Of a stretch of 64,000 nt of DNA, positions 1,582-4,678 are shown piece by piece. Both the position numbers and the translations under genes were made by a program. Under the pieces are notes generated by a model. It was not told the origin of the DNA. It was given only the letters and a program-made list of their open reading frames with translations, and searched no databases. Positions within the stretch are counted from its first letter, which is position 1; each line of letters begins with the position of its first letter. The stretch is from positions 7,192,001-7,256,000 of the forward strand of contig NC_047075.1 of NCBI RefSeq assembly GCF_902459465.1, written 5' to 3'. This DNA comes from Asterias rubens (lineage: Eukaryota).

Positions 1582-4500
1582 CATCAGCAATCTTGTGGTA
1601 ACTGAAGTGTAGATACAGAAGAAACAGTAAATGAATTGAGGCAACAACTGAGGCTATTGTCAGCTTGTGGCTCCGTCCGTTAGTTCTTGATAAGTAGACA
1701 CCAACCTGTAGATACAGAAGAAACAGTAAATGAATTGAGGCAACAACTGAGGCTATTGTCAGCTTGTGGCTCCGTCCGTTAGTTCTTGATAAGTAGACAC
1801 CAACCTGTAGATACAGAAGAAACAGTAAATGAATTGAGGCAACAACTGAGGCTATTGTCAGCTTGTGGCTCCGTCCGTTAGTTCTTGATAAGTAGACACC
1901 AACCTGTAGATACAGAAGAAACAGTAAATGAATTGAGGCAACAACTGAGGCTATTGTCAGCTTGTGGCTCCGTCCGTTAGTTCTTGATAAGTAGACACCA
2001 ACCTGTAGATACAGAAGAAACAGTAAATGAATTGAGGCAACAACTGAGGCTATTGTCAGCTTGTGGCTCCGTCCGTTAGTTCTTGATAAGTAGACACCAA
2101 CCTGTAGATACAGAAGAAACAGTAAATGAATTGAGGCAACAACTGAGGCTATTGTCAGCTTGTGGCTCCGTCCGTTAGTTCTTGATAAGTAGACACCAAC
2201 CTGTAGATACAGAAGAAACAGTAAATGAATTGAGGCAACAACTGAGGCTATTGTCAGCTTGTGGCTCCGTCCGTTAGTTCTTGATAAGTAGACACCAACC
2301 TGTAGATACAGAAGAAACAGTAAATGAATTGAGGCAACAACTGAGGCTATTGTCAGCTTGTGGCTCCGTCCGTTAGTTCTTGATAAGTAGACACCAACCT
2401 GTAGATACAGAAGAAACAGTAAATGAATTGAGGCAACAACTGAGGCTATTGTCAGCTTGTGGCTCCGTCCGTTAGTTCTTGATAAGTAGACACCAACCTG
2501 TAGATACAGAAGAAACAGTAAATGAATTGAGGCAACAACTGAGGCTATTGTCAGCTTGTGGCTCCGTCCGTTAGTTCTTGATAAGTAGACACCAACCTGT
2601 AGATACAGAAGAAACAGTAAATGAATTGAGGCAACAACTGAGGCTATTGTCAGCTTGTGGCTCCGTCCGTTAGTTCTTGATAAGTAGACACCAACCTGTA
2701 GATACAGAAGAAACAGTAAATGAATTGAGGCAACAACTGAGGCTATTGTCAGCTTGTGGCTCCGTCCGTTAGTTCTTGATAAGTAGACACCAACCTGTAG
2801 ATACAGAAGAAACAGTAAATGAATTGAGGCAACAACTGAGGCTATTGTCAGCTTGTGGCTCCGTCCGTTAGTTCTTGATAAGTAGACACCAACCTGTAGA
2901 TACAGAAGAAACAGTAAATGAATTGAGGCAACAACTGAGGCTATTGTCAGCTTGTGGCTCCGTCCGTTAGTTCTTGATAAGTAGACACCAACCTGTAGAT
3001 ACAGAAGAAACAGTAAATGAATTGAGGCAACAACTGAGGCTATTGTCAGCTTGTGGCTCCGTCCGTTAGTTCTTGATAAGTAGACACCAACCTGTAGATA
3101 CAGAAGAAACAGTAAATGAATTGAGGCAACAACTGAGGCTATTGTCAGCTTGTGGCTCCGTCCGTTAGTTCTTGATAAGTAGACACCAACCTGTAGATAC
3201 AGAAGAAACAGTAAATGAATTGAGGCAACAACTGAGGCTATTGTCAGCTTGTGGCTCCGTCCGTTAGTTCTTGATAAGTAGACACCAACCTGTAGATACA
3301 GAAGAAACAGTAAATGAATTGAGGCAACAACTGAGGCTATTGTCAGCTTGTGGCTCCGTCCGTTAGTTCTTGATAAGTAGACACCAACCTGTAGATACAG
3401 AAGAAACAGTAAATGAATTGAGGCAACAACTGAGGCTATTGTCAGCTTGTGGCTCCGTCCGTTAGTTCTTGATAAGTAGACACCAACCTGTAGATACAGA
3501 AGAAACAGTAAATGAATTGAGGCAACAACTGAGGCTATTGTCAGCTTGTGGCTCCGTCCGTTAGTTCTTGATAAGTAGACACCAACCTGTAGATACAGAA
3601 GAAACAGTAAATGAATTGAGGCAACAACTGAGGCTATTGTCAGCTTGTGGCTCCGTCCGTTAGTTCTTGATAAGTAGACACCAACCTGTAGATACAGAAG
3701 AAACAGTAAATGAATTGAGGCAACAACTGAGGCTATTGTCAGCTTGTGGCTCCGTCCGTTAGTTCTTGATAAGTAGACACCAACCTGTAGATACAGAAGA
3801 AACAGTAAATGAATTGAGGCAACAACTGAGGCTATTGTCAGCTTGTGGCTCCGTCCGTTAGTTCTTGATAAGTAGACACCAACCTGTAGATACAGAAGAA
3901 ACAGTAAATGAATTGAGGCAACAACTGAGGCTATTGTCAGCTTGTGGCTCCGTCCGTTAGTTCTTGATAAGTAGACACCAACCTGTAGATACAGAAGAAA
4001 CAGTAAATGAATTGAGGCAACAACTGAGGCTATTGTCAGCTTGTGGCTCCGTCCGTTAGTTCTTGATAAGTAGACACCAACCTGTAGATACAGAAGAAAC
4101 AGTAAATGAATTGAGGCAACAACTGAGGCTATTGTCAGCTTGTGGCTCCGTCCGTTAGTTCTTGATAAGTAGACACCAACCTGTAGATACAGAAGAAACA
4201 GTAAATGAATTGAGGCAACAACTGAGGCTATTGTCAGCTTGTGGCTCCGTCCGTTAGTTCTTGATAAGTAGACACCAACCTGTAGATACAGAAGAAACAG
4301 TAAATGAATTGAGGCAACAACTGAGGCTATTGTCAGCTTGTGGCTCCGTCCGTTAGTTCTTGATAAGTAGACACCAACCTGTAGATACAGAAGAAACAGT
4401 AAATGAATTGAGGCAACAACTGAGGCTATTGTCAGCTTGTGGCTCCGTCCGTTAGTTCTTGATAAGTAGACACCAACCTGTAGATACAGAAGAAACAGTA

Positions 4501-4675
4501 AATGAATTGAGGCAACAACTGAGGCTATTGTCAGCTTGTGGCTCCGTCCGTTAGTTCTTGATAAGTAGACACCAACCTGTAGATACAGAAGAAACAGTAA
4601 ATGAATTGAGGCAACAACTGAGGCTATTGTCAGCTTATGACTGCGTCCGTTAGTTCTTGATAAGTAGACACCAAC
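1582..4675 (-). CDS. YIPF3: YIPF3 exon 7, last TM helix (VGVYLSRTNGRSHKLTIASVVASIHLLFLLYL-HFSYHKIAD). The single-copy form is 124 nt (1705-1582), expanded here to 31 copies.
   Basis: Native acceptor ...ttttgtaccacag|GTTGG at 4676/4675 and native donor GAT G|gtaagc at 1582/1581. Resembles human YIPF3 ...LHMLFLLYLHFAYHKVVEG. Confidence 0.9.
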
Positions 4676-4678
4676 CTG
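1608..4678. repeat. 99-bp tandem array, 31 copies
   Basis: Unit starts are at 4675, 4576 ... 1705 on the minus strand (2970 = 30 x 99). Copies look identical except the first. Confidence 0.98.

Follow-up and report, generated by a model that had tools for sequence, protein, structure and literature searches.

Splice acceptors are recognised together with a nearby downstream donor, a principle known as exon definition. Long introns of Drosophila and vertebrates contain recursive splice sites, or ratchet points, in which a pyrimidine tract and AG|GT lie next to each other inside the intron. Human minisatellite-like arrays whose units carry splice sites have reportedly become intronic or alternatively spliced. 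To our knowledge, there are few clear, recent natural cases in which coding sequence was turned into intron by tandem duplication. Under the Rogers model, an intron is gained when an exonic AGGT segment is tandemly duplicated; this has been demonstrated experimentally (Hellsten et al., 2011, PMC3265369), and cases of it are described in Drosophila (Lehmann et al., 2010, PMC2891723). A tandem duplication across an intron-exon boundary of potato RdRp formed a separate new intron, to which the parental intron passed on its branch site, pyrimidine tract and 3' site (Ma et al., 2016, PMC4974935).

We investigated a 64-kb window of the Asterias rubens genome (64,000 nt, the whole stretch of DNA analysed here), in which a minus-strand tandem array occupies the boundary between intron 6 and exon 7 of a YIPF3-like gene. 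Tandem Repeats Finder reports a period of 99, 31.0 copies, 99% matches and a score of 6123, and these head-to-tail copies of a unit between 10 and 100 bp long (99 bp x 31.0) form a minisatellite. The unit consists of the last 1-4 bases of intron 6, from G alone to ACAG at most, and the first 95-98 bases of YIPF3 exon 7, and a copy-by-copy comparison found 30 of the 31 copies identical. The exception is copy 1, which adjoins the original intron and has mismatches at 4637, 4640 and 4643 only, all of them at synonymous third-codon positions (CGC/AGT/CAT in copy 1 versus CGG/AGC/CAC). Starting at 4675 on the minus strand, the unit encodes VGVYLSRTNGRSHKLTIASVVASIHLLFLLYLQ, and the reading frame stays open across all 31 copies before ending ...YLHFSYHKIAD G|gtaagc, with the donor after 1582.

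The explanation that we favour, and consider very probable as a whole, is that a duplication grew into a minisatellite that is spliced at its last acceptor, with mRNA and protein unchanged. A microhomology-mediated tandem duplication would have copied a 99-bp segment made of the last base or bases of intron 6 and the first 95-98 bases of exon 7, each new junction rebuilding a CAG acceptor behind a pyrimidine-rich coding stretch. This event would predate the split of Asterias rubens and Asterias amurensis. In A. rubens, a copy-number-variable minisatellite of ~20-75 identical units (31 in the assembly) would have grown from the downstream unit type. The exon 6 donor would pair with the last acceptor, the sole one that gives the normal 124-nt exon, and the upstream copies would all be removed within an enlarged intron 6, leaving mRNA and protein as they were.

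By homology to named proteins with YIPF3_N and Yip1 domains, the gene is YIPF3-like (Table 1). The 41 residues encoded by the last copy and the exon 7 tail match a YIPF3-like protein of A. amurensis at 100% identity, an unnamed 265-aa protein at 98%, YIPF3 of Patiria miniata at 80% and YIPF3 of Strongylocentrotus purpuratus and Lytechinus pictus at 73%, and all proteins matched by this exon 7 peptide have a single unit. Most of the matched YIPF3 proteins carry PF28233 and PF04893; the two sea-urchin proteins carry PF28233 only. With tblastn, residues 1-283 of the A. amurensis protein fall on seven colinear minus-strand exons at 92-100% identity. Exon 2 shares 92% protein identity with its A. 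amurensis counterpart, and 6 of the 123 nt of exon 6 differ. The seven real donors of the gene are all GTAAG or GTATG, and the exons past exon 7 lie beyond the start of the window. Pfam scans of single exons gave no match, nor did Rfam over 1-11500, and an ESM Atlas search with a piece of exon 4 returned just low-score bacterial channel clusters. Pfam matches to the 1030-aa translation of the array (KIF2A-like, Ribophorin_II_C and others) were rejected as artefacts in which weak matches are summed over 31 repeats.

Table 1. Coordinates of the YIPF3-like gene and of the 99-bp array within the window.
Feature	Positions	Strand	Basis and remarks
Exon 1, coding part	10912..10950	-	ATG at 10950; tblastn, splice sites
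Exon 2	9212..9397	-	boundaries from splice sites around the tblastn match
Exon 3	8362..8468	-	tblastn, splice sites
Exon 4	7755..7893	-	single-copy here; tblastn, splice sites
Exon 5	6333..6464	-	loose RNA-contig end located at 6334; tblastn; splice sites
Exon 6, 41 codons	5427..5549	-	donor ATG|gtaagt; RNA contigs, tblastn, splice sites
Effective intron 6, 3721 nt	1706..5426	-	2970 nt (30 units) would be former exon, judging from RNA contigs
Original intron 6 3' splice site	4676..4700	-	AG at 4677-4676 behind ...ctttcttgtacccttttgtaccacag; intact
Array, 99-bp x 31.0	1608..4679	-	Tandem Repeats Finder; copy-by-copy comparison
Copy 1, beside original intron	4577..4675	-	copy comparison; variant type shared with A. 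amurensis upstream copies
30 junction acceptors	1706..4578	-	AG at 4578-99k/4577-99k, k=0..29; sequence
Exon 7 in mRNA, 124 nt	1582..1705	-	last copy + 26-nt tail CTTCAGTTACCACAAGATTGCTGATG, then donor gtaagc; RNA contigs

The preliminary description of this locus had reported a 31-fold in-frame array that rebuilds its acceptor at each junction, and both the repeat analysis and the open frame bear this out: every unit-unit junction reads TTCATTTACTGTTTCTTCTGTATCTACAG|GTTGGT (also written CTGTATCTACAG|GTTGG), containing CTACAG|GTTGGT. The original boundary between intron 6 and exon 7 reads TTTTGTACCACAG|GTTGG (also written ttttgtaccacag|GTTGG), and the single-copy exon runs on as CTACAC TTC, so that ACA is common to both breakpoints. 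The microhomology mechanism put forward earlier is the one that this shared ACA suggests. Upstream of each junction acceptor, a pyrimidine-rich tract is formed by codons for IHLLFLLYL, and GTTGGT downstream completes AG|GT; TTCAT and TTTAC, ~22-28 nt upstream, may serve as branch-point-like motifs.

Across the 64-kb window, most tandem arrays lie away from exon junctions. A 55-bp x 7 array (38382-38768) whose unit holds GGTAAGA was considered as a second splice-site array and rejected, with no coding sign there.

Since perfect repeats can be misassembled, the preliminary description had warned of an assembly artefact, under which a genome with one or few copies would have had its repeat inflated by the assembler and depth over the array would collapse to 1/31 of the flanks. 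Read evidence was taken from Logan contigs with a word length of 31, in which copies are not directly countable, rare variants are dropped and minor isoforms are invisible; the region compared with the reads, 4478-5600, comprises two copies, intron 6 and exon 6. Taking contig word depth as a rough ratio and not a calibrated copy number, run X15 (organism D, possibly the assembled sample) has flanks at 136.8, 155.4 and 163.6, the unit at 5263.6 and the junction at 5071.4, a ratio of 32-38 in this best DNA run next to the 31 copies in the assembly. On the same rough scale, a 129-nt contig reaches 1367.2 over flanks of 17-18.6 in X10 (organism C, from another study; ratio ~73-80) and 72.6 over flanks of 3.5-4.3 in X17 (a marine metagenome, hence a population sample; ratio ~17-21). 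The flank contigs of the three data sets are 0-3 letters off the window per 150-300, so they come from the same or a very close species.

These contigs also contain the junctions themselves. Every word of a 51-nt contig in X15 spans a unit-to-unit junction, and the ratio of junction to unit depth is 0.96, near 30/31. The 129-nt contig of X10 and X17 crosses the junction without mismatch, and its length (99+30) is that of a closed cycle in the word graph. No contig of X15, X10 or X17 runs across 4630-4649, where the copy-1 variants lie; the likely cause is that the assembler pops a 1x path against a 30x path. This confirms that the array is real and present in three DNA data sets. Its size varies between samples, because unit depth is ~33x, 75x and 19x that of the flanks, the opposite of a collapse, and on these rough depth ratios the array also shows the copy-number difference between individuals expected of a VNTR. 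While the perfect identity of 30 copies would suit an inflated assembly, the depth ratios, the junction-specific contigs in all three data sets and an independent A. amurensis assembly with 8 diverged copies, PacBio-based according to the literature, largely refute an artefact, which we regard as having very little chance of being correct.

The orthologous exon, a comparison already suggested in the preliminary description, carries the same array in A. amurensis. At locus L001 (GCA_032118995.1), the 99-bp array occupies the same exon (17967-18741; 7.8 copies, 95% matches), and its junctions are all identical, CTACAG|GTTGG. Its upstream copies have C33/T36/T39, the three variants of A. rubens copy 1, and its last three copies have G33/C36/C39, as do the 30 identical A. 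rubens copies. Because both variant types occur in this way in the sister species, copy 1 is an old edge copy whose three synonymous bases are older than the species split, and the 30 identical units are a recent expansion of the downstream type. Unit position 66 is T in all A. amurensis copies and C in all window copies, which points to homogenisation within each species. The array is thus old, common to the sister species and variable in copy number, and only the 30 identical copies are recent.

The A. amurensis version has also decayed at its edge, where the original AG and 16 exon bases at the start of copy 1 are lost to a 17-nt gap, so the original acceptor is gone in this species. The diverged array is not private to the reference animal, as DNA run X25 (organism B) contains a copy-1-type contig with a G48 variant and shows a summed unit depth roughly 8x that of the flanks. 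RNA run X2, which bears the same label (organism B), matches A. amurensis at 4 of the 5 listed differences in exon 6. Patiria miniata has one copy and an intron at the same position and phase (tttcag|GTAGGTGTC...). Since position and phase are the same in Patiria, an existing conserved intron was lengthened and no new intron was created, which qualifies the link made earlier to intron creation by tandem duplication.

We further investigated how the array is spliced. One joint, from 5427 to the unit start with the intron skipped, is found in contigs of X1 and X8 (RNA, organism A), X2 (RNA, organism B) and X21 (organism E, labelled DNA yet carrying the splice joint). Past the unit, contigs of X1, X8 and X2 read ...ATGG CATCAGCAATCTTGTGGTAACTGAAG, which is the 26-nt exon 7 tail (1582-1607), and then enter the next exon; exactly one unit therefore lies between exon 6 and the tail. 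A contig across a unit-unit junction was found in none of the four RNA runs (X1, X8, X2 and X21; k=31 contigs). With one unit in these four runs and in the homologous proteins, the mRNA has its pre-duplication sequence.

The unit type identifies the acceptor. The X2 unit departs from the window consensus at a single place, 4511 (G>A, corresponding to T at unit position 66), and only the last of the eight A. amurensis copies agrees with it. This shows that A. amurensis splices to the last acceptor and that its seven former exon copies are intronic. The annotated A. amurensis isoforms (289, 292 and 310 aa) each have one unit and differ in length by 3-21 aa. X1 and X8 carry a unit of consensus type, not copy-1 type. 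For the window species, use of the last acceptor and a normal protein follow if the RNA-sampled animals carry the array: these RNA runs are labelled organism A, unlike the DNA runs (C, D). Carriage is likely, because the array is found in all three DNA data sets of the species and in the sister species. The earlier suggestion that splicing to the last acceptor yields a normal protein and leaves ~3 kb of former exon in the intron is thus supported by the four runs in which one unit is joined to the tail.

A very different product would arise if the original, first acceptor were mainly used, namely an exon of 3.1 kb and a YIPF3 longer by 30 transmembrane-helix units of 33 aa each. In its favour, nothing interrupts the frame and the original acceptor has stayed intact, and hydropathy (19-residue window) peaks at ~1.9-2.0 once per unit, so that each added unit would contribute one transmembrane-like segment. 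Nevertheless, the RNA contigs hold one unit of consensus type, not copy-1 type, that runs straight into the tail, and A. amurensis has lost the original acceptor by deletion and has amino-acid changes in its upstream copies. We consider main use of the first acceptor extremely unlikely; its use to some degree is plausible, since it is intact and transcribed first.

Low-level use of upstream acceptors beside the normal mRNA would instead yield an in-frame ladder of isoforms that grow by 33 aa per step. The penultimate acceptor would still define an exon of 223 nt, the 29 upstream junction acceptors match the last one over -99 to +95, and rare forms would be invisible in contigs. On the other hand, all four RNA runs are free of junction contigs, and between the three A. 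amurensis isoforms the differences amount to 3-21 aa instead of 33. A low-level ladder is therefore possible in our judgement, although somewhat unlikely. Both the ladder and the 990-aa insertion had been anticipated from the open frame in the preliminary description, and neither finds support in the RNA, where one unit and no junction contig were seen in four runs.

Another route to the same single-unit mRNA would be stepwise, recursive removal, in which splicing regenerates ATG|GTTGGT and this serves as the next donor. A 3' site directly followed by a 5' motif, the arrangement of a recursive site, is present at 30 of 30 junctions as a pyrimidine tract and CAG|GTTGGT, and the latter agrees with the donor consensus in 7 of 9 bases. 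Only 2 of 16 A. amurensis substitutions fall in the 54 junction-proximal bases (p ~5e-4, for a partition chosen post hoc), which would also suit recursive use. However, the real donors are all GTAAG or GTATG and GTTGGT is much weaker. Moreover, normal splicing regenerates the same GTTGGT site, which is evidently unused, as exon 7 is kept. Recursive removal consequently strikes us as quite improbable, and direct splicing to the last acceptor remains our preferred reading.

Substitutions among the copies carry a further signal. The two species together show 16 distinct substitutions between copies, 11 of which are synonymous against ~27-33% expected (p ~0.0006-0.003). Those at unit positions 33, 36, 39, 48 and 66, which mark old copy types or species differences, are synonymous in five of five cases. 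The synonymous excess could reflect change in the functional last copy, exchange with its alleles, or past translation of the upstream copies. As to location, 2 of the 16 lie within the 54 bases nearest the junctions (p ~5e-4), this partition having been chosen after seeing the data.

Over -99 to +95 the last acceptor has the same sequence as each of the 29 junction acceptors upstream of it, so the choice between them must be positional, and exon definition is likely the reason why the last site wins. A second, mirror-image array in the same gene of A. amurensis supports this. There, seven in-frame copies of a 69-bp unit (L001 14430-14914) are each made of the last 63 nt of exon 4 plus GTAAGA, and A. 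amurensis proteins have one exon 4 unit, requiring the first donor of the 69-bp array; the site that gives the short, normal exon wins in both arrays. A broader reading is that junction-seeded tandem arrays are a systematic asteriid feature and a real route of intron growth, with a junction-linked cause shared by the exon 7 and exon 4 arrays or with active tolerance of them. On this reading the internal AG|GT would be kept functional, for example as recursive or decoy sites, as hinted by how little the diverged A. amurensis copies vary close to the junctions. We think this unlikely.

Compared with intron gain under the Rogers model, the YIPF3 array shares an exonic tandem duplication with AG|GT junctions (CTACAG|GTTGGT), the splicing out of one copy's worth or more with the mRNA unchanged, and an in-frame unit that permits retention variants. 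It differs in that splicing in the RNA joins the old exon 6 donor (5427) to a unit start: the donor is pre-existing, no intron appears at a new position, and an existing conserved intron grows. There are also 31 copies here instead of 2, and their number varies between samples. As in the potato RdRp gene, the duplicated segment straddles the junction of an intron with the exon after it, and what used to be exon comes to lie within intron. In contrast to potato, only 1-4 intron bases were copied in YIPF3, and the splicing signals are not inherited from the parental intron: the 30 bases before each new AG encode SIHLLFLLYL, and coding sequence supplies the pyrimidine tract and the candidate branch points. 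Unlike both systems, the YIPF3 duplication grew into a polymorphic minisatellite.

The resemblance to ratchet points lies in the juxtaposed pyrimidine tract and AG|GT within an intron, but the GT side in YIPF3 (GTTGGT) is weak, with no sign of use. The human minisatellite-like arrays differ in that the YIPF3 array sits at an existing splice site and only a constitutive single-unit mRNA is seen. Several stages can be compared at this one locus, from population alleles of differing copy number to an older, decaying version in the sister species and an unduplicated outgroup. The array is also a natural competition test in which 30 acceptors are identical over -99 to +95 and the mRNA uses the one adjacent to the donor, isolating the effect of position on 3' splice-site choice in line with exon definition. 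For annotation, it warns against taking an open frame across an array of this kind as proof of translation. Altogether, the YIPF3 array is a well-explained feature and a variation on known intron change by tandem duplication.

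At the YIPF3 locus of the sister species Asterias amurensis (L001), alignment of L001:17940-17970 with window positions 4659-4685 leaves a 17-nt gap on the A. amurensis side, which deletes the original intron 6 acceptor together with the first 16 bases of array copy 1. The A. amurensis gene also carries a second boundary array, whose unit joins the 3'-terminal 63 nt of exon 4 to the donor GTAAGA. This array is in frame, its copies show one synonymous difference, and the A. amurensis YIPF3 proteins include only a single unit. The window does not have it.

Two sequencing runs, X8 (of unspecified kind) and X21 (listed as "DNA?"), contain the spliced exon 6-exon 7 joint while the intron is almost absent, and thus behave as RNA libraries. 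In addition, a 265-aa YIPF3-like protein (P0002; 1590-nt record) matches exon 7 with 98% identity, and its N- and C-termini are unlike those of the annotated isoforms. Its source is probably a transcript of a different asteriid in which the ends are alternative or retained.

Intron 6 of the window also holds an element with 34-nt terminal inverted repeats that are 82% complementary. Its word depth reaches 10^4-10^6 in every run, as compared with 4-160 for the flanks, showing that this is a very high-copy MITE-like repeat. At window position 4913, the assembled base is C; the DNA runs X15 and X10, as well as X8, have A only, and a contig from the marine metagenome X17 agrees with the window. 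The C in the assembly must therefore represent a less common allele, if it is not simply an error.

Features of the window and of the A. amurensis YIPF3 locus (L001)
Feature	Unit x copies or size	Coordinates	Location or basis
Exon 4 end + donor array	69 bp x 7	L001:14430-14914, plus strand	A. amurensis YIPF3
MITE-like element	~244 bp	window 5159-5402	within intron 6; terminal inverted repeats and word depth
Young tandem array, perfect or near-perfect	66 x 2.4	window 1-160	
Young tandem array, perfect or near-perfect	85 x 2	window 8508-8678	40 nt upstream of YIPF3 exon 3 acceptor
Young tandem array, perfect or near-perfect	90 x 2	window 46556-46736	
Young tandem array, perfect or near-perfect	47 x 5	window 55924-56156	

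A perfect 55-bp x 7 array lies at window 38382-38768, with a unit that includes the donor-like GAGGTAAGA; no coding sequence was seen there on quick inspection. Four further young arrays are present in the window, and the rate of minisatellite production seems to be high in the A. rubens genome.
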